A stretch of 63,641 bases of DNA, counting the filler, from Octopus bimaculoides (taxonomy: Eukaryota), in NCBI RefSeq assembly GCF_001194135.2. It is 5 parts of 5 records of this genome, joined end to end, with 100 filler letters (N's around TTAATTAATTAA, not from the genome) between each part and the next. Parts side by side here need not be neighbours in the genome. Positions count along the whole stretch, not along the records: positions 20,703 to 48,252 come from NC_069008.1; 4 more parts are not named here. One strand, written 5' to 3'. A program made the position numbers and the translations under genes. The notes beneath the pieces were generated by a model. It was not told where the DNA came from. It did not search any database and saw only the letters and a list, made by a program, of their open reading frames with translations. Shown one piece after another: positions 27,866-48,252 of the stretch. The stretch's first letter is position 1; each line of letters starts with the position of its first letter.

Positions 27866-28166
27866 TCCATTGATTATGGCGACGAGGGTTCTAGTTGATC
27901 CAATCAATGGAAGGGCCTGCTCATTAAATTAATATGCATGTGGCCGAGTATTCCACAGACACATGTATCCTTAACATAGTTCTCGGTATATGACAAGGCT
28001 GGCCCCTTGTGAATTACAGGTCCAACTCATTGTTGCCAGCTGAGTGGAGTGGAGTAACATGAAACAAAGTTTCTTCCTCAAGCAAACAATGCCCTGCCAG
28101 GAATTGAACACAGGACCACACGATTGTGAGCCGAATACCCCTAACGACTAATCCACATGCCTTCAC
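27866..28166 (-). mobile_element. tRNA-derived CORE-like SINE (family C)
   Basis: Minus head GTGAAGGCATGTGGATTAGTCGTTAGGG..GTGTTCAATTCC; CORE-like TTGAGGAAGAAACTTTGTTTCATGTTACTCCACTCCACTCAGCTGGCAACAATGAG. Confidence 0.75.
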
Positions 28167-28190
28167 TACACACACACAGACATCCTCAAT

Positions 28191-28446
28191 CAGTGGTTCC
28201 CTGGTCACGTTCCTAGTGCTCCCACCCCCAACTAACCATCACAAACTCAGACCTCTTTCTAAAGCAAATTCAAAACAATTGTATTTCACAAATAAAACCT
28301 AGTAAACCCATTATTTTGTTTTTACACCAATCACACCCCTTTTGGCTACCCCATTATCACGCCCCATTTCTTCAACGCCCCCTTGGAACTTTCCACTGCC
28401 CCCAGCGGTGGGGAGGGGGTTTTACCACCCACTTTGCGAACCGCTG
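28191..28446. mobile_element. hAT (Charlie-like) MITE
   Basis: TIR CAGTGGTTCC..GCGAACCGCTG; 8-bp TSD TCCTCAAT/TCCTAAAA; sister copy at 45678-45936. Confidence 0.85.
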
Positions 28447-28658
28447 TCCTAAAATCATAGCAAATACACCAGGCTTTCCTCTTTGTAGATGAAAGCATTT
28501 GGTAACTCTGAGCAAGGACTTGAGTGACCCTCCATAGAGCATGAGCAAAACCTCAAACTACAGAACTACTGACACCGGGACACTGGAGCTAATGTCACAA
28601 ACAGAATAATACATAAGAGGACTGCTTAGATACACTTAGACAATGGCACTTAAGTGAT

Positions 28659-29150
28659 ACATTAGATAATGTAATTGAAGATATGATATTTCAATACAAG
28701 GTGGGATGGTCAAAGCCGGAGCATCTTTGATCATAAATCTGTTGGATCAGGGCTGACCTGGGGTTAAATAACAAGGAAGGAAGGAGGGACATGTAAGATA
28801 GTGCTGTCCGAGATACATTTTGAATAAAAGACAGGATGGTCGTGGCTGGGACACCCGTGATCATAGCTCTCTCAGGTCAGGACTAACCTGGGGCTAAGCA
28901 ACATCTATATCAAGGTGCAACACATTAGATAATGTAATCCTAGATAGACTATGCCTAAATAAAAGATGAGATGTTTGCAGATGGAATATACTGGATCAAG
29001 TCTCACCTGGAGCTAAACAACAACAATAACAACAACAAGGAAAGACATTAAATAATGTAGTCCGAGATATATCAGGTCTCGATAAAAGGCAGGATGGTCA
29101 TGGCCGGAACAGCTATGATCATAGCTCTGTCAGGTCAGGACAACAACAAA
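28659..29150 (+). repeat. Four degenerate tandem units of about 123-133 bp
   Basis: Units start at 28659, 28789, 28922 and 29045 and share ACATTARATAATGTA, GGATGGTC, TGATCATA and GACCTGGGGCTAA-(CAA). Confidence 0.8.
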
Positions 29151-30297
29151 GTCTCTTGATATCCCTTTTGTCTCCCATCCTCCCCACCACCACCTTCCTT
29201 CTGCATCATCCACCCCACCCCACGCCTACCTGTTGCCAATCTTTACCCTAACCCCCCCCCACTCACCAAGAGTTGGCCAAAACATGACTCAGGGCCTGGG
29301 GGCTTCCCCACCGTACCCCTTTCCTCTGGATAAGGTGGGGCAGGTACAGGCGTGGGAGAGGGGCTGATGTAGCTCTGACTACCTANNNNNNNNNNNNNNN
29401 NNNNNNNNNNNNNNNNNNNNNNNNNNNNNNNNNNNNNNNNNNNNNNNNNNNNNNNNNNNNNNNNNNNNNNNNNNNNNNNNNNNNNNNNNNNNNNNNNNNN
29501 NNNNNNNNNNNNNNNNNNNNNNNNNNNNNNNNNNNNNNNNNNNNNNNNNNNNNNNNNNNNNNNNNNNNNNNNNNNNNNNNNNNNNNNNNNNNNNNNNNNN
29601 NNNNNNNNNNNNNNNNNNNNNNNNNNNNNNNNNNNNNNNNNNNNNNNNNNNNNNNNNNNNNNNNNNNNNNNNNNNNNNNNNNNNNNNNNNNNNNNNNNNN
29701 NNNNNNNNNNNNNNNNNNNNNNNNNNNNNNNNNNNNNNNNNNNNNNNNNNNNNNNNNNNNNNNNNNNNNNNNNNNNNNNNNNNNNNNNNNNNNNNNNNNN
29801 NNNNNNNNNNNNNNNNNNNNNNNNNNNNNNNNNNNNNNNNNNNNNNNNNNNNNNNNNNNNNNNNNNNNNNNNNNNNNNNNNNNNNNNNNNNNNNNNNNNN
29901 NNNNNNNNNNNNNNNNNNNNNNNNNNGAGGTGTGTGGGTGGGCGGGAGAGCTACTTTTGTTTCACTGGAATTCGAATGAATACAACAAAAATTCCTGTTT
30001 TGTGGTTTTTGTTGTTGTTAGTTGCCAGACTGGCTTCTGGTCAATAATTCTGACGTGGGAAGATGGCTGCTGTTGGGTTTCACAACCACAATGGGTCTTA
30101 GCTTTTAAGTTTGGCAGAATCGGTAGAACATCGGGCAAAAACAACCTTGTGCGGCATTCAGTTGTGGCCCTTTACGGTCTGGCCTCAAATCACACTGACA
30201 TCGACTTTTGCAGGGGCTCAGAAAATAACCAATTATGAAGTGGGAAGTGGTCAGTGGCATCAACTGACCATAGCCAAAATTTCTGGCATTGGACCTA

Positions 30298-30735
30298 TCA
30301 TCATCGTCATCGTTCTTGTTTAACATCCTCCTTCCGTGCTGGTATGGGTCAGACGGTTTGACAGGAGCTGGCCAGGCAGAAGCCTGCATCGTGCTTCCGT
30401 CTGTTTTGGGAGGGATTTTACCGCTGGATGCCCTTCCTAACACCAACCACCCTCCAGAGCGGGCTGAGTGCTTTTTACGTGGCCCCAGCACAGGTGAGGT
30501 CAGTTTTGGAAAGGTTTTTACATCTGGATGCCCTTCCAAATGCCAACCACTTTACAGTGTGGACTGGGTGCTTTTTAAGTGACACCAGCACTGGCAGGGT
30601 CACCAAGTAACCTGCAAGACAAAGATCCTTTGAGTGGGGAGGGGCATTGGAGGAGAGGATCTTGTGCCAGATGATAAAAGGTTAGAGTGTGACAGAGAGA
30701 CAGAAACAAGAGACTTGCTGTAGAGGAGGCACATG
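30298..30735 (-). mobile_element. RTE LINE 3' UTR with an internally duplicated module of about 95 bp
   Basis: Two CTGGATGCCCTTCC..ACCAACCAC modules; (TGA)n tail at the 30298 end. Confidence 0.75.
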
Positions 30736-30830
30736 GTTGCCTGGCTAGAGAGAGAGAGTTAACAAGAAATGATAATGATCCTTTCTACTAAAGGCACAAT
30801 GCCTGAAATTTTGGGGGAGGCAGTTGTTCT

Positions 30831-31530
30831 GAAAGCATTGTTGTCAAAATAAGAATGACACAGATAAAGTTTAGGAAGCTGGAACCTCTACTAGCAGCAA
30901 AGGAATACTCTGTCTCCAAGAGGCAGATAAATTGAATGATGCTTGTGCATGAAGTACAATGTCACATGGTAGCAGAACATGGTCATTGAATATCAAATAG
31001 GTGTGAAGGCTGATGGTCATTGAATGTGAAGTAGGTGTAGAGGTTGATGGTCATTGAATGTGAAGTAGGTATGAAAGGTGGAAAGGAAAGAGGANNNNNN
31101 NNNNTGTAGAGGTTGATGGTCATTGAATGTGAAGTAGGTATGAAAGGTGGAAAGGAAAGAGGAGACCGTGCTGCACTGGATGTGTAATGTTGGTGTGGAT
31201 GAGTAATGGAATAGAAATAAGCAGAGAAATTGACTAACTCGATACAAGAGGAAACAGCTGTAGAGTGCAAGACCAGAAACTACGTTTGTATGGACATGCG
31301 ATGCGTATGGATGGTGACAGATAGGTACAGAAGTATCAGGAGGTCTGGGTGGAAGGGACTCACAGCAGGAGAAGTAAAACAGGGGCTTCTGGTAAAGGCT
31401 GTTCTCAGGAAGGTGAATCTCATAAAAAATGCAATAAATAACAAGACACCATACTGGAAAAACTCATCCAAGTCTCATAAACAAAGAATAATACGCAAAC
31501 AATGACGACAGCAATGACAAGATGACAACA
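30831..31530 (+). mobile_element. Decayed RTE LINE C-terminal region with an internal 34-bp x3 tandem
   Basis: ESIVVKIRMTQIKFRKLEPLL, DACA*STMSHGSRTWSL, VLHWMCNV and LRLYGHAMRMDGDR*VQKYQEVWVEGT are standard RTE C-terminal motifs. Confidence 0.85.
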
Positions 31531-31680: not shown

Positions 31681-31839
31681 GGCTTGGATGAATAATATCA
31701 GCAAAAGAAAATACCTTAGGAATGAGGACCCAGGGTTGGGTTCAAAATTCTACAAGGACACCTAACGTAAATAATGTACTCTGCACACACACACACACAG
31801 AATGTTGTAATAGAGAAATTACTCCACCTTTAATCCCAA

Positions 31840-33149: not shown

Positions 33150-33305
33150 TAGACAGCTTCTTTCAGTTTCTGTCTACTAAACCCACTCACAAAGATTTGG
33201 TCAGCCTGAGGACATAGAAGACGCTCAAGGTGCCATGCAGTGGGATTGAACCTGGAACTATGTGGTTGGGAAGCAAGCTTCTTACCACATAACCATGCCT
33301 ACACC
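33150..33305 (-). mobile_element. SINE family A, 5' half, fully CpG-decayed
   Basis: Aligns to 23525-23684. Confidence 0.85.
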
Positions 33306-33575
33306 ATCTTTAAAGACAGTAAAGTATGATACAAGAGATTTGACTATCATTTCAAGCATTTTCAGTGACCCCTACGGAAGCTCCCTCGTTGGCTAATCTC
33401 TTCCCTGTACTAACACATCTGCTGACAATACTTCTACAGCATAAACACCTCCTCCTTCTCACTCCACCCCACCCAGTGACCATTAATCAAAGCTGCTGTC
33501 AGCGCCTTCTGCAGCAGTCACGCTGGCGGAACGAGACCATCTGCAATGCCATTAGCAGCATCGTTATCAGGCGAA

Positions 33576-33670
<95 letters not shown>

Positions 33671-33929
33671 AGTGCATCAACAGGAAAAAAAAACAAAAAC
33701 AAATCTACTTTGGTTGTGTAGTTAAAGGCATCTGATTGACAACTAAATTGGCAGGAGTTCAATCCCATGATACAGAGAACGTCTGTTAGCAGAGCCTTGG
33801 GTTTAACCAGGAACGTGCCATCAGGGTAGGCTGTTGGTGACCCTTATGTAATAAAACACAAAAAAAGAAGCAAAAACACAGACACATGACTGAGTTGAAG
33901 GCAGATTTACTTCTGCCTTTATAGCACAT

Positions 33930-34075
33930 AACATATTCCCTTCTCAGATTCACACAGTTATTGCAAGGGTCCTTCAGGTTTTCTAGGCCCTGTAAAAGAA
34001 CTTCGAAGGTCAGACCTCCAACCAAGCCTTTTGCAATACTCTTAAAACCAGGAACTTTTCAATCCCCCCCTTGTA
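33930..34075 (-). mobile_element. Mariner-derived MITE (TIR plus transposase C-terminal remnant)
   Basis: TA-CAAGGGGGGGATTGAAAAGTTCCTGG end; encodes LQGLENLKDPCNNCVNLRREYV, like a mariner C-terminus. Confidence 0.8.
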
Positions 34076-34330
34076 TGTCTGATATATATAATATGTACAA
34101 CAAAATACCATAAACAAACAAACGAAGAGCCACCTTAAGCAGCTCAACCCTTCAAGAATTACAATTTCAAAGAAGAATAATTTGAACCACAAGATTCATA
34201 ATCAACAGACACACCAAATGTATAGGTCCATCAACAGCAGCCACACACATACACACATTTATGTCTGCACCCTCTCACATAACTTGAAATATGCTGTGGT
34301 ATAAAGCATCAGTATAGATCTGTACCTTAC

Positions 34331-34400
34331 CCCCAAAGAAACAGCAGACGGGAATTCCATACTTACCTGCAAAGAGAAATGAAAATTAAATTCAAAACAA
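34331..34400 (-). promoter_or_regulatory. Candidate recursive splice site (3'ss immediately followed by 5'ss) plus 36-nt RS-exon
   Basis: Minus strand TTTTGAATTTAATTTTCATTTCTCTTTGCAG|GTAAGT (junction 34367/34366); second donor GGGG|GTAAGG 36 nt downstream. Confidence 0.55.
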
Positions 34401-34602
34401 GACCACAAATTCTTTTCACAAAATGCAACAAATGGCAGAGTTCCAGGAATTTTGGTAGACAATTATAACAAATAATAATAATAACAATAATAATCCTTTC
34501 AACTAAGGCACAAAGCCTGAAATTTGGTAGGAGGGAATAAGTCGATTACATTAACCCTGGTATTCAACTGGTAAAAGAAAATACAGGAGAATCAGTTAAT
34601 TA

Positions 34603-34757
34603 TGATTTTATTCAACATATTCCCCTCTCAGCTTCCCACGCTTATTGCAGGGGTCCTTCAGTTTTTCTAGGCCCTGTAAAAGAACTCGGAAGGTCAGGCC
34701 TCCGGCCAGGCCTTTTGCGATACTCTTAAAGCTAAGAAGTTTTCAGCATCCCTTGTA
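34603..34757 (-). mobile_element. Mariner-derived MITE, second copy
   Basis: Closely similar to 33930-34075. Confidence 0.8.
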
Positions 34758-34956
34758 TGTGTGTGTATACATACATACACAAGTCTGGGAAAAGGTTGTT
34801 TATGGAAGACCAGCAGTTACCTATGCATGCCAGCCTCCCCTTCCCCACACCATTATATGTACATAGGGTAAAGGGTAGAGACCCCCTTTGGTCAAGAATG
34901 ACAATGGGATTGCACCTAGAAAGTTCCCCTTCAAAGCACAGACAGATAGGAAGATG

Positions 34957-34988
<32 letters not shown>

Positions 34989-35624
34989 TAGGATGATGGG
35001 AGTGAGGGAAAGAGAGAAGACAGGAGAGAGAGAGATAAATAGGAAGATGGAGAGAGAGAAACAATGGGAGTGTGAGAGAAAGCGAAAATACGGGTGGGGT
35101 GGGGGTTTCAGAAAAAGTAAAATGAGATGAAGTTGAGAACAGAGAAAGAAAAGTTGCAAAGCGAGGAAGGAAGGCAGAAACAACCACCAGGGATGCTAAG
35201 CTGCTGCTGCTAGCTACTCACTGTCCCACTTGTTAACACCCTGTCTGTCTGTCTGTCCTCTCATGTTTCAGTCACACCAATTGGTTTACTAGAAACCAAA
35301 CCACATTCCTCAAATTCTTCCTTCAGAACTGTCAACCACTTGTTGCTATTTAACCCAAGGTCACACCTGACCCACTAGACCTTAACACCAAACCTGTCCC
35401 AGCAACAACCATTCATACTTTAAAAAAAAATTTTTTTTTTTTACAATTATTTTTATTGCAACAGTGTATCTAGGACTACATCAGCTAAAGTGTCCTACTT
35501 TACTTTTGTCGATGCTGTTTAGCGTCAAGGACATTCCTGATCCAGTAAATCTCTACGATCAAAAGGCACTCCAGACATGGCCAACCTGTCTTTTATTCAT
35601 ATGCAATAAGTGCAGTTGTAGCAT

Positions 35625-35698
35625 AGGTAACAGGTATGACTGCGCAATAGGTTTCCACATGGTTCCAGGTTCAGTCCCACTCGATAGCACCTTGGGCT
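35625..35698 (+). mobile_element. SINE family A head, truncated
   Basis: CCACATGGTTCCAGGTTCAGTCCCACT..CACCTTGGGC abuts the Tc1 fragment. Confidence 0.7.
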
Positions 35699-36021
35699 GC
35701 CACCTCTTCTTCGCCCAGGGCAGCACTACCTCCTCCAGGCACTTGATGTAGACCTCCATGTTGAGTCTGAGACCATGTGGGAAGATGAATGGCAGCATAA
35801 TGTTGCCCTCACTAGTGATCACTCCAAACACCATGGTGTTGACTGGATGTTTGATTTTTATCCCTCTCAGTACGTGTCCTCAGATTGACACCCAAACACT
35901 CTGAAATGTTCGTATTAGCGCTTCCAGCATGAATACCAAGCTGTACAGTTTGTCGTTTCTAAATTTCTGGCAGAGTATAATCTGCATAATTTAGACATCA
36001 ATATATTCACCGCATCCTGTA
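35697..36021 (-). mobile_element. Internally deleted Tc1/mariner-superfamily transposon
   Basis: TA-CAGGATGCGGTG TIR; HTH start GIHAGSANTNISECLGVNLRT fused to catalytic-domain KHPVNTMVFGVITSEGNIMLPFIFPHGLRLNMEVYIKCLEEVVLPW. Confidence 0.9.
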
Positions 36022-36039
36022 TATATGGATGGATGGATT

Positions 36040-36255
36040 GATGGATAGATACATGACGTGTGCGTTTGTCCCCCAATACTGCATGAACAACAAGTGTTGG
36101 TGTCTTTACATCCCTGTAACTTAGCAGTTTGGAAAAAGAGACCAATACAATAAATATCAGGCTTAATAAAAAAAAAAGTACTAGGGTGGATTCCTTCAAT
36201 TAAAATTATTCAAGATGGTGCTCCAGCATGGCCACAGTTTAATGAGTGAAAAGAG
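36040..36255 (+). mobile_element. SINE family A, 3' half
   Basis: GTAACTTAGCAGTTTGGAAAAAGAGACC..GGTGCTCCAGCATGGCCACAG tail. Confidence 0.8.
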
Positions 36256-36274
36256 TAAAAGGCTTTTGTGAGTG

Positions 36275-36336
<62 letters not shown>

Positions 36337-36457
36337 NNNNNNNNNNNNNNNNNNNNNNNNNNNNNNNNNNNNNNNNNNNNNNNNNNNNNNNNNNNNNNNN
36401 NNNNNNNNNNNNNNNNNNNNNNNNNNNNNNNNNNNNNNNNNNNNNNNNNNNNNNNNN

Positions 36458-36605
36458 TTATATCCTTGTAACTTAGCGGTTCGGCAACAGAGACCAATAG
36501 AATAAGTACTAAGCTCACAAAGAATTAAGTCCTGGGGTCGCTTAGTTCGACTAAAGGCAGTGCTCCAGCATGGCCAGTCAAATGACTGAAATAAGTAAAA
36601 GAATA
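36458..36605 (+). mobile_element. SINE family A, 3' half
   Basis: Tail GTGCTCCAGCATGGCCAGTCAAATGACTGAAATAAGTAAAAG. Confidence 0.85.
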
Positions 36606-36789
36606 ATGGCATGTAAAAACAACAACAAATTGTTTTTAAGACAAGAAATATGCGAAGGAAATGAATGAAAGCCACAAAGGGAAAGTTTGTGACACATTAT
36701 TAACCGTGAACTGAAAACCTTAATGCAAGCAGCAACCTTTGTTTGAGATGTGGATGGGAGGATACGTAAATGTGTGTTTGGTGGAATGT

Positions 36790-36957
36790 TGTAGACAGAG
36801 AGAGACAAACAGACAGACAGAGACAAACAGACAGACAGAGAGAGACAAACAGACAGACAGAGAGAGACAAACAGACAGACAGAGAGAGACAAACAGACAG
36901 ACAGAGAGAGACAAACAGACAGACAGAGAGAGACAAACAGACAGACAGAGAGAGACA
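36790..36957. repeat. 22-bp minisatellite (AGACAGAGAGAGACAAACAGAC)n
   Basis: About 7 copies running into a gap. Confidence 0.9.
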
Positions 36958-37515
36958 NNNNNNNNNNNNNNNNNNNNNNNNNNNNNNNNNNNNNNNNNNN
37001 NNNNNNNNNNNNNNNNNNNNNNNNNNNNNNNNNNNNNNNNNNNNNNNNNNNNNNNNNNNNNNNNNNNNNNNNNNNNNNNNNNNNNNNNNNNNNNNNNNNN
37101 NNNNNNNNNNNNNNNNNNNNNNNNNNNNNNNNNNNNNNNNNNNNNNNNNNNNNNNNNNNNNNNNNNNNNNNNNNNNNNNNNNNNNNNNNNNNNNNNNNNN
37201 NNNNNNNNNNNNNNNNNNNNNNNNNNNNNNNNNNNNNNNNNNNNNNNNNNNNNNNNNNNNNNNNNNNNNNNNNNNNNNNNNNNNNNNNNNNNNNNNNNNN
37301 NNNNNNNNNNNNNNNNNNNNNNGCTGCCTTAAAATAATAGACAGAGAACACCACTGGAAAATATGAAAGCTAAACAAAGCAGCACATATGCTAGGGCACA
37401 ACAACCTCCTAAGCAGACCAAGTGCAGATATGAACAGCATATGGGAACCGGTATTAAGGAAGGATAGGAGAATATTAGATTTATAAGCACTGAAATTCAC
37501 TCCATAATTGCCCAC

Positions 37516-37750
37516 GGGCATATGGCGTAGTTGTTAAGAGCACGGACTACTAACACCAAGATTCCTAGTTCGATTCCAGGCAGTGACGTGAAGAATACTA
37601 ACAACATCAAAAAATACCTTAGGAATGAGAACCCAGGTTCGAACTTTCCCCAAGACACCTGATGAAAGCTGGAGGGTATATCAGCTGAAATGTCTTAGCA
37701 ACAAACAAGATGAGGACAAATATCCGTCAATTGTAAATAATGTAAATAAT
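37516..37750 (+). mobile_element. tRNA-headed SINE carrying a degenerate hammerhead motif
   Basis: A box TGGCGTAGTTG (37523), B box AGTTCGATTCC (37567); CTGATGA-A-AGCTG(10 nt)CAGCT-GAAA-TGTC at 37659-37694; partial sister at 31706-31778. Confidence 0.7.
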
Positions 37751-37764
37751 TAACAGGTTTTAGT

Positions 37765-37935
37765 TGAAGAAGTCGGCCTCTAGGGCTTCTTTCAATTTCC
37801 GTCTACCAAATCTACTCAAGGCTTTGGTCGGCCCAAGGCTATAGTAGAAGACATTTGCCCAAGGTGCCACGTTGAACCCAGAACCATGTGGTTGGGAAGC
37901 AAGCTCCTTGCCACACAGCCACACCTGCACCTACA
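37765..37935 (-). mobile_element. SINE family A, 5' half
   Basis: Aligns to 23525-23684. Confidence 0.85.
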
Positions 37936-38152
37936 GAAATTTTATACAGATAATGCATAATACACACAAATACATATGCACATGTAGAAGGAGCTGCATA
38001 CAGGATCGATTGACTGGCTAAAAACAGCAGCAGAATCGACCTTAAATCACATCAACACACACAAATACACATTTATACACTGATAATATACACACATTAA
38101 TATTTAACAGAACAGATTCAAGGTATGAAGGTTTCGTACATTGGCATCAACA

Positions 38153-38244
<92 letters not shown>

Positions 38245-38650
38245 CAGCTATCATTTGGTATGTAGAAAAGTACTGCCTTCTCATGCACCACACCCCTTAT
38301 CTGCCCACCACCACCGACAGACACACTTTTCAGTTTTAAGTGCTCATGTACCCAATAGCAGACACACACACCCCTACCTCCTTTCCACCCTCACCCTGTC
38401 GATCCGGCAGAGCAGCAAAAGTGTCACAGCCAGAAGCTAAGCTATATCTTGTGTGAACCAGAGAAGAGAGAAGCAAGACTTATTTAGAGGTGACTCTTAA
38501 GCTTCTTGTCACAGCACCACCCTGGGGGTAGGCATCTACAACTTGTACAAGATCCAATGGGGAAAATCTATTAGGGGTGGGTGAGGAATGCATCCTGGTG
38601 AGGGCTATGGCTGGTGACCCATAAGTGTATATATATATATAATTATATAT

Positions 38651-38823
38651 AGTATTAATAAAATAGATGGAATGTGTGATAGACTTTATTGGGTACAACA
38701 CGTTTCGACCCGTTCTGGGTCTCTTCAGGTACATCAATAAAAAGTCTCACTAGAGATTTCTTCAATTAGCTTCCGTACCCAATAAAGTCTATCACACATT
38801 CCATCCCCTATTTTATTAATACT
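38651..38823. repeat. 46/49-bp inverted repeat enclosing the hammerhead
   Basis: The reverse complement of 38651-38696 equals 38775-38823 except for a 3-nt insertion. Confidence 0.92.
38693..38732 (-). ncRNA. Intact-core minimal type I hammerhead ribozyme (Penelope-type)
   Basis: GUAC-CUGAAGA-GACCC agaac GGGUC-GAAA-C GU G-UU-GUAC: canonical core, 5-bp stem II, self-complementary stem III (with G-U), GUU triplet, stem I GUAC/GUAC. Confidence 0.85.
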
Positions 38824-39121
38824 GTTACCCCAACCACAACTACGAAGTCCCTGCAATAAATCTACGGATAACAACAGGGAATCAAAGCTGTGCTGGTGCT
38901 TTACTCATCATCGATTTATACATTTTGTATAATTTCTCCTGTGTGTGTGCGTTCGTGCATGCAATTTGAGGCGTTGTGCCTATAGTAGATACGATTATTA
39001 CAATCCAATATGTGATCACGGTTGCTACTGTATGTTAGTGAAAATACATATTAAAATTGAGAAATATTATGGAAATATTATTTGTAGTTCTTGTATTAGA
39101 TATCAAGATTATATATATATA

Positions 39122-39159
<38 letters not shown>

Positions 39160-39276
39160 CTCTGCCAAATTAGATTGGAGCCTGGTGTTGCCATCCGGTT
39201 TCACCAGTCCTCAGTCAAATCGTCCAACCCATGCTAGCATGGAAAGCGGACGTTAAACGATGATGATGATGATGAT
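39160..39276 (+). mobile_element. RTE LINE extreme 3' end
   Basis: CGTCCAACCCATGCTAGCATGGAAAGCGGACGTTAAAC-(GAT)n. Confidence 0.8.
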
Positions 39277-39741
39277 ATATACACACACAGACACAGAATT
39301 GTGTTGACTTTCATATTTGTGTGTATGTATTTATTAAAGATAAAAAGAGAAGATGGAATGTACCGACAAAAAATTTAATTACCACAACAATTGTTGTGAT
39401 CATATACCTTCTGACTGCTCGTTTTTATCTTTAATATACACCCAACGTCCATCCTGGAATTCCGAGAATTATTACAACGATATTTGCTAAGTATTGCTGA
39501 TGACGCCTGTTAGCCATAAGTGGTGAACATGCTCCGTGGACACACAACCTGGGACTTGCTCTGAAATAAGGTTTCGATACTGTGCTTAACACGTATTTTC
39601 TTGACCTTAATTCTTTAACCTTATATATATGTATATATATATATATATATATACACATGCATATATGCATACATGTGTGAGTTGTGTAAGAGACCCTAAG
39701 TCAGAGAGAAGATGCACTCGTACAACTGTCAGTTAAGTAGG

Positions 39742-40453
39742 TATATTATCCAAATTTTATACTATTGAATATCCATAATGGCTGGTGTTACCAATTGGTT
39801 TCACACAGAAATACAATGGAGTGTTAGGTAACAATCCAATTATATAGTTACGCTCATCAGAGATAGCCGATATGGAAGGGAATATGGCAATTGCTCTCTG
39901 TCGTCGGATGTGGATTAGCACAACTGGTCAGTGGCTGCTGTGAAAAAAGTGGTGGAATGAGAAATGGGCCAGGGGATTAGGCTAGGAGTTATGTCCCTTG
40001 GTCAGGTACGTTGTGAAGCCGGCAAGAGTTATCTTGAAGTGGGGAAAGCATGTATTAATAATGTGGTGTCTCTGCGGGGATGGAGTGCATGGCATTGGGT
40101 GTGTGGTATGTGTAGCGCTGTCATATATATAATTTTTTCAGGGGCTGTAGGTATGTATAGCTGTATTCGGGGGGCTGTAGGTATATATAGCTGTGTTCGT
40201 TGGTCTGTTTTCTTCCTGTAAAGGATAAAGTGGTCAGGGAGGGGGGTATATTAGCATGCAGTGTGTAATATAAAATGTGTGTGGGTGGGGGTACAATAGA
40301 GAGCAGTCGCCATATTCCCTTCTACATCGGCTACCTCTGATGAGCGTAATTATATAATTAGATTGTTATCTAACACTCCATTGTATTTTGCGCAAAACCA
40401 ATTAGTAAGACCAGCTGTGATGGATGCTTAATACTACAAAATTCGGATAATAT
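39742..40453. mobile_element. Penelope-like remnant: inverted repeats of about 155 bp, each with a hammerhead-like motif
   Basis: 39742-39900 is the inverted homologue of 40298-40453; each has CTGATGA-GCGTAA..(G/A)AAA-CCAATT(G/A)G-TA. Confidence 0.75.
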
Positions 40454-40512
40454 ATATACATATATATATTTTCTATTTTCTTAATTTTTTCTCCCTGTTT
40501 ATTTCTGTATTC

Positions 40513-40548
40513 CTTTCAGATGAAGAGCATAGGCTCGAAACGTAAAAG
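40513..40548 (+). ncRNA. Minimal hammerhead motif (U4A variant, extra A after A9)
   Basis: CUUU-CAGAUGA-A-GAGC auag GCUC-GAAA-CG-UA-AAAG. Confidence 0.7.
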
Positions 40549-40657
40549 ATTTTCTCACTTCCTGAGTGTTAAACTAATACATCTGTTTGCTGTTTACACA
40601 CCCAGCTTCGTGTTTTTTTTTTTTTTGTAAATTCTCACTGTATATATGTGAATATAC

Positions 40658-40694
<37 letters not shown>

Positions 40695-41139
40695 CTGGTA
40701 AAGGATGGGGCAACAGCAATGAAGCTCAAAAGTAGAGACATGAGGGAATGTCAACGACCTAAACACAAGGTAAGGCTTTAGTCACAGTTAAGCCATCATC
40801 TCTAGCAACAGATTGAATCATAGTTTTTATGTAACAGAAAACTGTGTCCTGAAAACCAATGCAGTTCTGTTGATGTCTTCAGGTGTTTTCTATGACACCT
40901 GGCTGCTGGTGCAAGATGTGATTGGCTGCGATATATGTTGGCAGGTGTGTGTTGGACGTGTGCAGGAGTGGTTTTTAAGTGTGCTGTGACTAAATTAGCA
41001 AATGAAATAATATTAGTCAAACCGTGAAGCCAAATCCAAACAGAGCTGCTACGGGTTCAATCTCAAAGGGGATACTTGTCAGCTCCATAACTTGAGGTTT
41101 TCCAATCCTATGAAATTCTAGGAGTATCCAATAAATTCA

Positions 41140-41325
41140 TCATCTTTTACTCGTTTCAGTCGGAGTGTGGCCATGCTGGAGCACTGCTTTGAAGGGATAA
41201 GTCGAACAAATCCTTAAAGCCTGGTAATATTCTGTCAATCTTTTTTTGTTGAACTGCTAAGTTACAGGGATGTAAACAAACCAATACTGGTTGAAAATAT
41301 GTGGGGTTGTGACAAAGACACTTAT
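41140..41325 (-). mobile_element. SINE family A, 3' half
   Basis: TTTCAGTC..GGCCATGCTGGAGCAC tail in reverse orientation. Confidence 0.8.
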
Positions 41326-41339
41326 ACAAATATACATTT

Positions 41340-41545
41340 GTGTTTCCTTATCTTGACACTGTGTGATTGTAAACGAGTGTCACTGTCGTATAAGCGGTGT
41401 CATTCATTTCCAGGGTTCTATGTGAACTTGTCAGGCCATGGGGGAAATATCACCTTGCTGAGAAACAGGCAAGGACTGGTGACAGTGAGGGCATCCAGCC
41501 TTACAAAGTCGGCCCCAAATAAACTCAGTCCTACTCATGCAAGCA
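41340..41545 (+). mobile_element. Short element ending in an RTE-type tail
   Basis: GAGGGCATCCAGCC module and CTACTCATGCAAGCAGGGAAACGCAGATGTAAAC, like the 39226-39260 tail; body differs from the RTE UTR. Confidence 0.55.
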
Positions 41546-41809
41546 GGGAAACGCAGATGTAAACAATACACACACAAGTGCACACAATAGGTTTCTGCAT
41601 AGTTTCCATCTACTATTTTCACTTTCTAAGCCACTCAGAACTCCATGAATTTTTCAGACGACCAACATTGTTTACTTGAGATGACCATCACTTTGTAATT
41701 GGATTTTACGGAAATAATAGTAGAAGACTGTACGAGTATATATATGTGTGTGTGTGTGTGTGTGAGTGTATTTACCAGCATAAACCAGGTGTTTTTGTAG
41801 CCCTTTATA

Positions 41810-42105
41810 AGGGATACCTTTCAAGTGTTGGGCCTCACGGACGCAATGACCGAGGCCTTTGGCATTATGCTGTGCTTGAGAAGAAGAACCATCAAGGTGA
41901 ACAAAATCGCAGTCGTGGCAGATACTGGTGTCACGCAAATGGCACCCATGCTGGTGGCACGTAATGGCACCCATTACACTCTCAGATTGGTTGGCGTTAG
42001 GAAGGGCATCCAGCTGTAGGAAACCATGCCAAATCAGACTGGAGTCTGGCGCAGACTTCCAGTGTGCCAGCATGGACAACAGGCTTTAAATGATAATGAT
42101 GATGG
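41810..42105 (+). mobile_element. 5'-truncated RTE LINE (last codons plus 3' UTR)
   Basis: LGLTDAMT..RGLWHYAVLEK followed by the GGTTGGCGTTAGGAAGGGCATCCAGC module and a (TGA)n tail. Confidence 0.8.
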
Positions 42106-42107
42106 TG

Positions 42108-42144
<37 letters not shown>

Positions 42145-42280
42145 GGTAGATAAATATGATGGAAGACACACAGACACACACACACATGAAAGTAGATAAA
42201 TGGATAAACAGAGATGAAAGTAGGGACAGATATAGAGAGAAGCTGATAGAGGCAAATAGACAAAACAGATGTATAGACAC

Positions 42281-42315
<35 letters not shown>

Positions 42316-42433
42316 TGTGTGTGTGCATGCATCTGTTCATGTGTTTTGATCAGAATGCTAACATAGCCACCAACAGCATACCTATTTAGATATATAAACA
42401 GCATCCTCACATCCAAATAAATATACATGCTTG

Positions 42434-42474
<41 letters not shown>

Positions 42475-42539
42475 TAGATAGAGAGAGAGAGAGAGAGAAA
42501 GAGAGAAGAAGATGGCAGCCAGCATCTATCTTCTAATAC

Positions 42540-42607
42540 TTGCTTCCATCCTTGCTAACAAGTCATCATTGGAGAGGCCAAGGTTGTGGGCGAATAAGGA
42601 AGTAGAG
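42540..42607 (-). CDS. Possible 68-nt internal exon (unverified)
   Basis: Acceptor GTTTTCTGTAATGTTCTTCAG, donor CAA|GTATTA, open frame STSLFAHNLGLSNDDLLARMEA; a complex island between SSRs on the same strand as the RS site. Confidence 0.3.
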
Positions 42608-42620
42608 CTGAAGAACATTA

Positions 42621-42654
<34 letters not shown>

Positions 42655-43315
42655 TATGCAAACAGATACACACACACACACAAACATATATATATATATA
42701 CATCAATACTAGAGAAGAAAATACATGTGGTATGTGTGTGTGTGCATATAATATACATACATACACACGCATATACATTATGTTTATATACATATTTATA
42801 TATATATATGTATGTAATGTGTGTATATATATATATATTTATATATGTATATATATTTATATATACTTGTATGTAATACCTGTGTGTGTGTATATATATG
42901 TATGGATGTAATATGTGTATATATATTTATATGTATGTGTGTATATATAATAAATATATGTAATGTGTGTGTATATATATATAGTGTATACATGTATGTA
43001 ATATGTGTGTATATATAGTGTATATATGTAATATATGTGTCTATATATATATGTAATGTATGTATATACTATATATATATTTATACATCTATATATATTC
43101 ATATATATATAATGTATGTATGTATATTATATATATATATATATATTACATATATGTATATATATATAATGTATGTATGTATGTAATGTGTGTGAATGCG
43201 TTTGTTAGTGTTTATATGTTTGTGTGTATGAAATATGAACACAAAACCCGGAGCAGCCAGAGAGAGAAAATATATTTACAATATAAAAGTGTGGCAATTA
43301 ACTATATTTATAATA

Positions 43316-43367
<52 letters not shown>

Positions 43368-43670
43368 TGTGTGAGAGAGAGTGTGCGTGTGTGAGTGTGC
43401 GTGTATGCACACACAACACACGCATGTGCAGTAAAGGCTGGTGCTTAAAAAAAACTCACCGTTTCTATTGAGGGTGACTAATCGCTGGCTTATTGTTATA
43501 AACGAACATCCATTCCTGGTTGCTCTATTGCTTCTTCATCTCTCTCTCTCTCTCCTTCACATGTCAAATAACAAATATATACACTCACACACACACGTAC
43601 ATATATACACTTGCATATACACACCTTCCAGTGTATAGGAAAGAGGTGAGATAAGACAACATGCCAGCAC

Positions 43671-43782
43671 TTGTGTGTGGGTGTAGTGTGTGCGTTTAAA
43701 GGTGTGTGTGTGTATGGTCTAGTTGTGTGTGGGTGTAGTGTGTGCGTTTAAAGGTGTGTGTGTGTATGGTCTAGTTGTGTGT
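43671..43782. repeat. 52-bp tandem duplication
   Basis: TTGTGTGTGGGTGTAGTGTGTGCGTTTAAAGGTGTGTGTGTGTATGGTCTAG twice, plus a partial third copy. Confidence 0.92.
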
Positions 43783-44984
43783 GTGTGTGTGTATAGCCTA
43801 GTGTGTGTGTGTGTATGTAAGTTTGTATACAATGTAGGCTGTATATAGTTATGTGTGGGCCTGCACGTCTGTGTATGCTGTAGGATATTTATGTATATGT
43901 AAGTCTGTATATGGTGTAAGCTAAATACATTTATGTGTGTGTGTGTGTGTGTGTGTAGAGGCAGCTTCATCACCATGCCACAGATGTGAGCAATTCTTTC
44001 ATGAAAAGTTTCTATAGAAATTCAAGGCGGGCCAGCATTTTATCAGCATTGAGGTATTTCCTGGTCCTCAACAGGAAAATGATGTTTTTCGATGAGGCCA
44101 AACACAGTAATCGCACAACCTGTTTTGTTTTCTTTGTTTTTTTTTTTTATCCTGAAGGCACTCCGCAAAAATTTAAAAGCGAAACTCCACAAGCCAAATA
44201 AAATTCATTTTCTCTCCTAATAGAGAAAAAAAAATGACATCATCATCATCATTGTTGTTTTAGCCATGGCTGTGGATTCAGCGCCAGAGTCGGAAACAAT
44301 TAACGTATTTTAACATGTATAAGAAACCTGATTTTGTCAAAAATTAGGATTTAAAAAATAGGGGAGTTTTTTTTAATCCCTTACAAAACTGCTTTTCCCC
44401 AAAATTAGGNNNNNNNNNNNNNNNNNNNNNNNNNNNNNNNNNNNNNNNNNNNNNNNNNNNNNNNNNNNNNNNNNNNNNNNNNNNNNNNNNNNNNNNNNNN
44501 NNNNNNNNNNNNNNNNNNNNNNNNNNNNNNNNNNNNNNNNNNNNNNNNNNNNNNNNNNNNNNNNNNNNNNNNNNNNNNNNNNNNNNNNNNNNNNNNNNNN
44601 NNNNNNNNNNNNNNNNNNNNNNNNNNNNNNNNNNNNNNNNNNNNNNNNNNNNNNNNNNNNNNNNNNNNNNNNNNNNNNNNNNNNNNNNNNNNNNNNNNNN
44701 NNNNNNNNNNNNNNNNNNNNNNNNNNNNNNNNNNNNNNNNNNNNNNNNNNNNNNNNNNNNNNNNNNNNNNNNNNNNNNNNNNNNNNNNNNNNNNNNNNNN
44801 NNNNNNNNNNNNNNNNNNNNNNNNNNNNNNNNNNNNNNNNNNNNNNNNNNNNNNNNNNNNNNNNNNNNNNNNNNNNNNNNNNNNNNNNNNNNNNNNNNNN
44901 NNNNNNNNNNNNNNNNNNNNNNNNNNNNNNNNNNNNNNNNNNNNNNNNNNNNNNNNNNNNNNNNNNNNNNNNNNNNNNNNNNNN

Positions 44985-45160
44985 AGGAGTCGGAGTTGTC
45001 AGCAGGAGGAGTCGGAGGTGTCAGTCGGTAGGAGTCGGAGGTGTCAGTCGGTAGGAGTCGGTAGGAGTCGGAGGTGTCAGCAGGAGGAGTCGGAGTTGTC
45101 AGCAGGAGGAGTCGGAGGTGTCAGTCGGTAGGAGTCAGAGGTGTCAGTAGGAGAGGAGTC
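44985..45160. repeat. GC-rich composite minisatellite (22/23/10-bp units with an AGGAGTCGG core)
   Basis: AGGAGTCGGAG(T/G)TGTCAG followed by CAGG or TCGGT; emerges from a gap. Confidence 0.9.
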
Positions 45161-45677
45161 GAAGCTTTTTCTTTCAACTCCACAGCCCTGGTTTTAGCAT
45201 CTACTTTTCCTTGCTTCCATGGATCAAACAGTCTCCAAAGATGAGTCAGGTCAATCAAGGTGTGGCGGGGCATGTGATGGCACAGCCCCTTGCTGTGGTC
45301 ACCATTTGTGTCAGGATATTCACAGGTCCTTCTGGATTCTACTCAGTCCTCATCACATCTGCCATGTGGTTGACCAACACAAGCCATTGTCAACCCTGCC
45401 AGATCCTCAGTAAACAGGATCTAACTTGTTAAAATCGAGAAACATGACCAAACAATTCCGAGCTGGCACTCCTAAATCCTACATGAAACAGGATACATCC
45501 CAGATGCTGAGATGTTGATTGGATAGGAAACCTGACCAATGGTAACCCATAATTCTGTGAAGCATCCTGGTATCAAAGGACTTCAGGTGATCCCTGAGGG
45601 TCCTGGCCACTGTCCAGGTCTCACAACCACAGAGAGGACCAGAGACCTAAAGACATGAACCCTTTACAACTATAGAT

Positions 45678-45936
45678 CAATGCTTCCCAAACTTTTGGAG
45701 GCTGCTGCCCCCTTGACACCCAGGCCACATTCCTAGCACCCATACAAACACAGACCTCTTTATGAAGTAAATTCAAAGCAACTGTATTTCACAAATAAAA
45801 CTTAACCTCATGACCCCATTATTTTGTTGTTTTTACATGAATTACCACCCCATTATCAGCCCACTTTTCTTCAGCACCCCCTTGGAATTTCTCACCACCC
45901 CAGAAGGGGCAATACCACCCACTTTGTGAACCACTG
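45678..45936. mobile_element. hAT (Charlie-like) MITE
   Basis: CAATGCTTCCCAAA..TTTGTGAACCACTG; TSD CTATAGAT/CTATAGAA. Confidence 0.88.
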
Positions 45937-46149
45937 CTATAGAACAGGATAGGAAAGACCATAGACCTAAAAATCTGACCCTTGGTCTCTCTGCACAGAT
46001 ATATAAAGACCGTTGAGTAGAATTCCAGTCAGGTCTCCATCTCAGCGAGATACCTCCTCGTCTACTGTGCCCATGTGACATGTACTTGACCAGCATGAAC
46101 CAACCAACTAGCCCAGCTGGATCCTCGGGGAGGAGGACACAAGGGTCAA

Positions 46150-46440
46150 GCAGATGTGGAGGGAACTTACGGAAGAGGTAACCTCAGGAAGGCAATGGGA
46201 TGAGGTGGTGAAATATGATGTTGGGCCTCTTGGAGGCAATGACTAGTGACCAAGAACTTTGGCGATGGGCTGTGCTTGAGAAGACCCGTCAAGCCAAGTG
46301 AAATCAGAGTCATGGCCGATGCTGGTGCCACGTGACTGGCCCCTGTGCCAGTGGAACATAAAGGCACATGTGCCAGTGGCATGTTAAAAGCACCTATTAC
46401 ATTTTTGGAGTGGTTGGCATTAGAAAGGGCATCCAGTGGC
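46150..46440 (+). mobile_element. RTE LINE C-terminus plus start of 3' UTR
   Basis: VEGTYGRGNLRKA/WDEVVKYD..LGLLEAMTSDQELWRWAVLEKTRQAK*. Confidence 0.82.
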
Positions 46441-46444
46441 TATA

Positions 46445-46880
46445 AGTGGTGCCCAAGGTGCCATGCAGTGGGATTGAACCCAGAACCATGTGGTTGGGAG
46501 GCAAGCTTCTTACCACACAGCCACATTATATATATATTAATATATTTTCTTTTTTCCTTGTTTCAGACTGTGGCTATGCTGGGGCACCACCTTGGAAGAT
46601 TTTTAGTCAAATGAATCGCCCCCCAGGACTTATTGTGGATTTGATAGATGGAAACTGAAAGAAGCCTGCCATGTGTGCGCGTGGTGTCCCACCACCATTT
46701 GACAACTGGTGTTGATATGTTTATATTCCTGTAACCTAGCAGTTTGGCAAAAGAGACTGATAGAATAATTAACAGACTTTAAAGAAAATTTAAATAAACA
46801 CTGAGCTCCATTCATTCGACAAAAAATTGATGGTAGAGCCCCAGCATGGCCACTGCCTAATGACCGAAGCGAGTAAAGGA
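46445..46880. mobile_element. Nest of SINE family A fragments in both orientations
   Basis: Minus head 46445-46525, minus tail 46545-46635, plus body and tail 46635-46880. Confidence 0.75.
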
Positions 46881-47275
46881 TAGATGCATATAAATCTGTA
46901 GAAAAAAAATTCACAACAAAGGAACCGAGAGCGAAAGATCTCACGTTCATAGAAACCTCAAAATCAATGTTTTCTGTTGATAGATTAAAAAAACAAGTAA
47001 AGAAAGGAAGATTCTTGTTTGGTTTGGGGGGAAAAAAAGGGAGGGGATAAAGATGAAAGCTTTCCTCAGGCGTGATATTTTCAATAGCAAATGGTTTCAC
47101 CTTTGTTAAGGAATGAATAAAGAGAGAGAGAGAAAGAGTGAATAACTGTGAAGCAGAATATATGTTTACACGAATGAGTGATTATTGGGAGAGGAGGGAG
47201 GGGGGAAGACACACGATAATGATAAGAATGAATTCAAATTTTTGCCTCAAGGGCAGCTTGGGGGGNNNNNNNNNN

Positions 47276-47455
47276 GGGAATTAAGTCGATTACATTGACC
47301 CCCAATGTGTAACTGGTACTTATTTAATCAACTCTGAAAGGATGAAATGCAAAGTCGACTTTGGTGGAATTTGAACTCAGAATGTAGAGTGACAGGTGAA
47401 ATACCGCTAAGCATTTGGCCCAGCGTGCTAACGATTCTGCCAGCTCACCGCCTTA
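47276..47455 (-). mobile_element. SINE family B
   Basis: Aligns to the 26121 and 57340 copies. Confidence 0.88.
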
Positions 47456-47464
47456 ATAATAATA

Positions 47465-47790
47465 ATAAGTGGATTTGGTAGACGGAAACTGAAAGAAGCC
47501 CATCATATATATATGTATATGTTTGTCCATCCCCACCATCACTTGACAACTGATGTTGATGGATTTACGCCCACCCCCATAACTTAGCGGTTTGGCAAAA
47601 GAGACCAATAGAATAAGTACCAGAATAAGGCTAAATGATTAGCAGCATTTTGTCCACCTTTTGTGGCATTTTGTCCACTTTTACATTTCTGAGTTCAAAC
47701 TCCACTGACGTCGACTTTGCCTTTCATCCCTTCCTGGGTCAATGAAATAAGTACCAGCTGAGCACTGGCCTTGTGCTAAAGATTTGAAAC
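47465..47790 (+). mobile_element. SINE A body followed by SINE B body
   Basis: GGATTTGGTAGACGGAAACTGAAAGAAGCCC..AGAATAAGTAC, then TTCTGAGTTCAAAC..GTCGACTTTGCCTTTCATCC. Confidence 0.8.
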
Positions 47791-48252
47791 CTATGTGATT
47801 CAGCAGAATAATTCTTCTTCCTCAGGCTTCCATTACTTCCTCCTCCTCCTCCTCCCAATGTTATTTTTGTTTTTTGACATGTTTTTTAAGACTACGTATG
47901 GTTTCTTAATATCCTTAGGCTTTGTGTATCCTCAAATACAAGAGATTACTATAACATAGATATTTAAATCTTAGCATTAAGAGTTTGAAGGAAAATCTGC
48001 CAAATGACTGATAAGGGGGAGGGGGGTAGACAAGATTAGTCAATCGTGTATGCATGTGTGTGTGTGTGTGTGTGTGTATTTTTATTTATTACATTTTTCT
48101 TTTATTTGTTTGTCATTTGACTGCGGCCATGCTGGAGCACCACCTTTAGTCGACCAAATCAACCCCAGGACTTATTCTTCGTAGTGGTGTTGCAAAATTT
48201 GACTTGTGCATATTAATTTCCGTTATGCCCTTTATATTGTATCAAAATTTCA

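Follow-up and report, generated by a model that had tools for sequence, protein, structure and literature searches.

Ratchet points with cryptic recursive-splice exons (RS-exons) are reportedly present in the Drosophila genes Ubx, kuz, and Bx (Duff 2015; Joseph 2018, 2021), and RS-exons are said to occur in the long neuronal genes of vertebrates (Sibley 2015). Here, we describe a site on the minus strand of Octopus bimaculoides DNA (assembly GCF_001194135.2) at which a pyrimidine-rich tract and a CAG acceptor are followed directly by a GTAAGT donor, and for which the leading reading, held tentatively, is that of a ratchet point, or recursive splice site, with a 36-nucleotide (nt) cryptic RS-exon. 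Throughout, "the window" denotes the whole stretch of DNA that was analyzed, 63,641 nt long and made up of five parts of this genome joined end to end; the site lies in the part that comes from NC_069008.1 (positions 20,703–48,252), referred to below as the piece.

In flies, the intermediate of recursion consists of an upstream exon, the donor of the ratchet point, the cryptic RS-exon, and unspliced intron (PMC8605326, PMC6110457), and the vertebrate intermediate is described as having the same form (PMC6224609). The motif of cryptic RS-exons in flies is kept intact while the body of the exon drifts (PMC8605326), and recursive sites lie in introns of 8 kb or more (Pai 2018, PMC6110457).

The octopus site resembles the Drosophila ratchet points (PMC8605326, PMC6110457) in its juxtaposed acceptor and donor, in its pyrimidine tract and GTAAGT, and in a short cryptic exon that has a donor of its own (36 nt here, ∼50 nt in flies). 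It further resembles them in RNA that joins an exon to the ratchet point with the downstream intron attached, in an exon body that drifts beside an intact motif, and in a segment that is missing from mRNA-type data. There are two differences. Fly sites come with a sawtooth pattern, lariats, reverse transcription PCR (RT-PCR) of both intermediate and product, donor mutants, and deep conservation, whereas the evidence here comes from contigs and a word index; and most cryptic RS-exons in flies are out of frame, whereas the length here is a multiple of three. With vertebrate RS-exons (Blazquez 2018, PMC6224609), the site shares the elements of the RS-exon definition model, in which the 5′ splice site reconstituted at the acceptor competes with another one farther downstream, and the setting of a distant upstream exon. 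Inclusion and skipping have been measured in vertebrates, along with how far they depend on the exon junction complex and nonsense-mediated decay, whereas here the product of neither donor was seen.

Layout of the site

Read directly on the minus strand, the site runs ttgttttgaatttaattttcatttctctttgcag/gtaagtatggaattcccgtctgctgtttctttgggg/gtaaggtaca, where slashes mark splice boundaries, or, with more of the sequence upstream of the acceptor written out, ...tttaattttcatttctctttgcag/gtaagtatggaattcccgtctgctgtttctttgggg/gtaagg. The pyrimidine-rich tract occupies 34369–34400, 16 of the 20 nt before CAG being pyrimidines. A branch-point-like TTTAAT is found at 34390–34385, with its A at 34386, 19 nt from the AG; judged from its sequence, it may function as the branch point. 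The CAG 3′ splice site lies at 34367–34369 (AG at 34368–34367) and is abutted directly by GTAAGT, a consensus 5′ splice site, at 34361–34366. The candidate RS-exon or microexon that follows (34331–34366) is closed by a second candidate donor, GTAAGG (34325–34330), which stands 36 nt past the acceptor in the context GGG/GTAAGG or, with one more letter, GGGG/GTAAGG. Frames 1 and 3 of the 36-nt segment are open and translate to VSMEFPSAVSLG and KYGIPVCCFFG, respectively; frame 2 begins with TAA. An earlier note on this DNA, made from the sequence alone, had placed CAG/GTAAGT, the 36-nt segment, and GTAAGG at these minus-strand positions and had described a frame-preserving exon with both translations; all of the coordinates match the sequence, the length is divisible by three, and the two frames are open as it stated.

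Within the segment, a single-nucleotide polymorphism (SNP) is present at 34350 (G>A, or C>T on the minus strand), carried by the public runs X1, X2, X12, X14, and X20, and not by X6. The frame 1 translation has Leu in place of Pro as a result, and that of frame 3 is unchanged.

To gauge chance, matches were counted against shuffled sequence. The 9-mer CAGGTAAGT has one match in the window against 0.25 expected, close to the figure of ∼0.3 guessed beforehand, and with a five-pyrimidine prefix (YYYYYNCAGGTAAGT) the single match compares with an expectation of 0.02 per window. At random positions in this piece, GTAAG follows within +20 to +100 in 3.7% of cases and GTAAG[TG] in 2.1%. The combined expectation for the full layout (prefix, acceptor/donor, and second donor) is ∼7e-4 per window; by extrapolation, a genome of a few Gb would hold some tens of such layouts by chance. 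Among the AG/GTRAG sites of the piece, this is the only one in which a strong pyrimidine tract is combined with downstream donors. Another member of that set, an AG/GTGAG at 29007 on the same strand, lies 5.4 kb downstream in sequence under repeat-derived contigs; 14 of its 20 preceding nt are pyrimidines, and there is no downstream donor within 120 nt of it.

Use of the acceptor in RNA

Evidence on transcription was taken from contigs of public runs (Logan contigs), from a sampled-word index, and from raw cDNA runs. Two contigs carry a junction, and they come from separate studies: run X14 represents sample S11 of study P5, and run X20 represents sample S12 of study P6, from which sample run X15 was also derived. 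The X14 contig (498 nt, depth 4.9) is colinear with the genome over 33898–34367 and then continues into 28 non-genomic letters. In transcript sense, this foreign end reads ...TAAACACATATATATTTAATATTTTCTC, then g/gtaagtatgg... (plus-strand form, GAGAAAATATT...), and the end of the upstream exon can be written as ...ATATTTTCTCG or ...TAAACACATATATATTTAATATTTTCTCG. The X20 contig (184 nt, depth 3.6) covers 34195–34367 and halts at the same base, the first 11 letters of its loose end being identical to the foreign end in X14. Both contigs place the RNA junction at 34367/34366, where the observed splice creates TCG/GTAAGT, a strong donor, and both remain unspliced through GTAAGT and GTAAGG, for up to 470 nt. 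With the X15 contig (34101–34349, depth 7.4), they make up an unspliced RNA-like stretch on the minus strand, 33898–34366, that is colinear with the genome in all three runs; of the sampled words of 34066–34366, X14 held 0.88, X15 0.76, and X20 0.40.

In contrast, the DNA-type runs X1, X2, X6, and X12 are colinear over the site at 8–56x, without a loose end. The unique flank upstream of the acceptor (34368–34493, 126 nt) is present in these four runs at the same 8–56x, whereas X14, X15, X20, and X25 have depth 0 there; for 34368–34495, X14 held 0.00 of the words, and only DNA-like runs held them. The break can be assigned to splicing on the minus strand because a canonical pyrimidine-tract CAG stands at that point, and splicing on the plus strand would require a non-GT donor. 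Since the same junction was found in two runs of two studies and is missing from the DNA runs, the AG at 34368–34367 is a genuine, used 3′ splice site on the minus strand. Furthermore, three runs cover the downstream side and none gives colinear RNA-like cover of 34368–34493, which argues for efficient use of the acceptor rather than noise; it looks to be used by essentially all of the molecules sampled here. The transcription of the minus strand proposed in the earlier note was thereby observed, in RNA-like contigs over 33898–34366 that carry the minus-sense acceptor junction, as was the junction from an upstream exon to 34366 that it had named as a check, in X14 and X20. Other apparent joints (e.g. 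34494 to 35425 and 33670 to 36277) were rejected as splicing, as they either recur in DNA or end, within repeats, at points that are not splice sites.

The 28-nt foreign end has no match in the whole window at ≤3 mismatches. As it is not found within 34368–48252, the partner exon must lie at least 13.9 kb upstream or inside an assembly gap, and a distant or gap-hidden exon of this kind fits a long intron. The same lack of a match in the window rules out that the piece itself gave rise to the junction by a back-splice or a local deletion, and a fixed paralogue was rejected because DNA contigs cross at single-copy depth with no branching. The local pyrimidine tract shares ATTTAAT and TTTCTC with the foreign end, but the idea that the latter is a diverged allele of the former was also rejected, since 22% of shuffles align equally well, as do 11% of T-rich 28-mers. 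With respect to spliced-leader trans-splicing, the same foreign end was not seen elsewhere among the loose ends listed. Farther upstream, an X15 contig (40668–40979, depth 9.5) lies directly 5′, in the minus sense, of an A14 run at 40613–40626; this patch and the A14 run together would fit oligo-dT internal priming on a minus-strand transcript ∼6.3 kb upstream.

Assessment of recursive splicing

Several features of a recursive splice site are combined at this locus, namely the juxtaposed motif, RNA that joins an exon to the site and has no counterpart in DNA, and a downstream donor, the last known from sequence only. The RNA takes the form of an upstream exon, GTAAGT, and unspliced downstream sequence, which is the structure expected of a recursion intermediate. 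We consider the site a candidate for the class rather than a member of it, credible but unproven. In the proposed series of steps, the CAG acceptor and the GTAAGG donor would first define the 36-nt segment. The distant upstream exon (...ATATTTTCTCG) is then joined to 34366, as seen in the contigs, and the sequence of the new junction directly implies that a TCG/GTAAGT donor is recreated there. In a fourth step, the recreated donor would remove the rest of the intron, so that nothing of the site would be left in the mRNA. On recursive splicing, the X14 and X20 contigs would represent the intermediate between the second and fourth of these steps.

Mature transcripts were examined in 14 mRNA-type contig runs, which held 0.00 of the words of 34066–34366, and in three deep raw cDNA runs (X24, X26, and X27; unstranded and sampled at ∼6%), in which depth was 0 at 34325–34443. 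Absence from both sets indicates that the segment is not in any abundant mature mRNA. No contig break was found on the donor side of 34366 or at 34331 in X14, X15, X20, X12, or X25, and the junction leaving 34331 that had been put forward as a further check was accordingly missing from all five runs.

A sawtooth drop at 34367 had likewise been suggested as a check. Depth in X14, X15, and X20 rises from 0 just upstream to 3.6–7.4 just downstream, in sparse contig depths that are a poor measure of abundance. Between unique sequence ∼1 kb upstream and that just downstream, depth was 1.65 versus 4.9 in X14, 4.4 versus 7.4 in X15, and 2.5 versus 3.6 in X20. In X15 and X20, cover drops further downstream.

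Conservation was followed in related organisms B and C, at an overall identity of 91–97%. Both core motifs are intact in the two, and GTAAGG is unchanged; the conservation sought in the earlier note is to this extent present, although it does not exceed what an identity of 91–97% would give free. In the most diverged relative, represented by run X18 of organism B, the 36-nt segment is changed at 3 of 36 positions (34340, 34347, and 34350), against 19 of 208 in the flank, and a body that changes at the rate of the flank argues against a coding microexon. In organism C, 4 nt are inserted at 34382, in a tract that is prone to indels. On the upstream side, the 83 nt of 34388–34470 are identical in organisms B (run X16) and C (run X17), and 34262–34387 carries five to six changes; in organism D, 6 of 9 sampled 31-mers of 34368–34495 are shared. 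Sequence comparison thus hints weakly (P ∼0.09) that the upstream flank may be conserved.

A number of observations weigh against recursion. The end of the upstream exon is AT-rich and of low complexity, with stops in two of three frames, and is probably non-coding; six-frame open reading frames (ORFs) of ≥45 amino acids across the piece yielded no convincing coding exon. No contig or read joins the upstream exon, which lies outside the window, to a downstream exon. X14 shows no drop in depth on the downstream side (4.9, 5.6, and 6.2). RNA-like cover in X14, X15, and X20 ends between 33898 and 33852 (∼33,890) and gives way to a common hole at 33647–33852, where DNA has 54–60x (in the bin 33714–33830, 0 in the three runs versus 60x in X1); cover returns in all three at 33268–33604, and the unique parts of 27850–31100 are nearly uncovered in RNA-like runs. 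A long downstream intron segment should stay covered, and it is for this reason that the stop near 33,890 counts. The intact cores carry no statistical weight, since at 9% divergence all 15 core positions would be left unchanged with a probability of ∼0.24. Finally, support is thin, at one contig per run with a depth of 3.6–4.9, and X14, X15, and X20 have library types that were guessed ("RNA?" and "?").

Overall, the claim of recursion or a microexon in the earlier note was partly supported. For recursive splicing, transcription, a used acceptor, and RNA resembling an intermediate were all found, but a clean sawtooth was not obtained. For an alternative microexon, the evidence went no further than the acceptor junction, with no break at 34331 and no trace of the segment in the mRNA-type runs.

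Alternative explanations

The alternative that survives best is a cryptic or alternative last exon, in which the upstream exon is spliced to 34366, cleavage and polyadenylation take place ∼475 nt on, near 33,890, the donors go unused, and GTAAGT is coincidental. We regard this as rather unlikely, yet several observations speak for it. Cryptic last exons repressed by SFPQ (PMC7997972) likewise involve use of an intronic acceptor and several hundred nt left unspliced after it, and their cover, too, ends near hexamers resembling poly(A) signals and a GU/U-rich run. At the octopus locus, the X14 and X20 contigs run unspliced past both donors for up to 470 nt, and cover in X14, X15, and X20 stops within 33898–33852 despite a DNA depth of 54–60x. 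The stop falls in a layout resembling a weak poly(A) site on the minus strand (33851–33923), in which TATAAA (33923–33918) and AGTAAA (33911–33906) are followed 15–20 nt later by CA and then by a GU/U-rich run (33886–33851). If the libraries were oligo-dT primed, a real tail would be needed for capture, as there is no A-rich tract nearby in the minus sense.

Against a last exon, no poly(A)-tailed contig was seen, and the end of the X14 contig at 33898 falls within a high-copy repeat, which by itself is enough to account for the break. There is no AATAAA in 34366–31105, where a single ATTAAA is found at 31834. The segment is missing from the 14 mRNA-type contig runs and from the three deep cDNA runs, and cover resumes at 33268–33604 in all three RNA-like runs. 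For a last exon to open with a perfect donor and to have another at +36, the chance is ∼1e-5. On general grounds, U1 telescripting would be expected to silence a weak poly(A) site that has two strong U1 sites 475 nt before it, and this also disfavors polyadenylation near 33,890. Finally, the locus departs from the known cryptic last exons (PMC7997972) in having no tail, no canonical AAUAAA, and no mRNA-type signal, and exons of that class do not characteristically open with a perfect donor.

An ordinary alternative cassette microexon of 36 nt (34366–34331), included in some mRNAs through GTAAGG without recursion, would account for the used acceptor, for a length divisible by three with two open frames, and for the good donor at 34330. 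However, none of X14, X15, X20, X12, and X25 shows a contig break at 34331, and the segment is in no mRNA-type run. Its body changes at the rate of the flank in X18 (34340, 34347, and 34350), the SNP at 34350 would replace Pro with Leu in frame 1, and stop codons interrupt two of the three frames at the end of the upstream exon. Among the readings of the RNA, that of a plain coding microexon is the weakest, and we consider it improbable.

That no splicing occurs, and that the junction reflects a DNA rearrangement or insertion allele carried by the animals from which X14, X15, and X20 came or a chimera of the Logan assembly, would draw on the guessed library types, on a repeat depth that tracks DNA copy number (∼0.05–0.24 of X1 throughout), and on the indel-prone tract with its 4-nt insertion at 34382 in organism C, but is very improbable given that the break falls exactly at a consensus pyrimidine-tract CAG, that the identical foreign sequence appears in two studies, that four DNA-type runs are unbranched at single-copy depth, that an insertion allele should leave the other flank covered when 34368–34493 is at 0 in all three runs, that the foreign end is neither found elsewhere in the window nor a diverged local copy, and that the contigs otherwise match the genome, bar the common SNP. 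Other explanations take up whatever probability recursion and these three alternatives leave.

Genomic setting

The scaffold that makes up the piece is broken by 12 runs of N and is rich in microsatellites and dispersed repeats. The motif sits midway in a single-copy island of ∼410 nt, in which a DNA contig (34032–34493) has the depth of other unique sequence. Bounding the island are two direct copies of a dispersed repeat of ∼135 nt, copy A at 33930–34066 and copy B at 34614–34750, which are 85–86% identical and have a DNA word depth of 30–45x single copy.

Five repeat-like ORFs gave no significant match to Pfam. By eye, the ORFs at 35562–35879 and 45482–45646, both on the minus strand, appear to be transposase and reverse-transcriptase remnants, with Pfam empty at E ≤0.1. 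An element resembling a short interspersed nuclear element is present as inverted copies at 33223–33265 and 35655–35697 (43 nt, 86% complementary) and is also seen near 23600, 26700, 37880, and 46470; the translated motif GTEPGTMW recurs over the piece. No tRNA was called by ARAGORN.

Implications

A full-text search of one literature collection for recursive splicing and cephalopods brought up a single incidental paper and no study of the process in these animals, in agreement with the earlier note, which knew of no characterization there. As a recursive splice site, the locus may be the first to be documented among cephalopods and, more broadly, among lophotrochozoans, a possibility that we put forward with some reserve. 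Should it instead prove to be a cryptic last exon, it would represent ordinary intronic polyadenylation with a coincidental donor. If verified as recursive, the site would offer a defined target for RT-PCR, lariat mapping, and minigene tests.

Cephalopod genomes are large and repeat-rich, with very long introns in neural genes. Recursive splicing has been characterized in Drosophila and vertebrates, and a verified cephalopod site would show whether the same solution is in use there. If the reading as a recursive splice site is true, the stepwise removal of long introns would be either ancestral to bilaterians or a process that arises repeatedly where neuronal introns lengthen.
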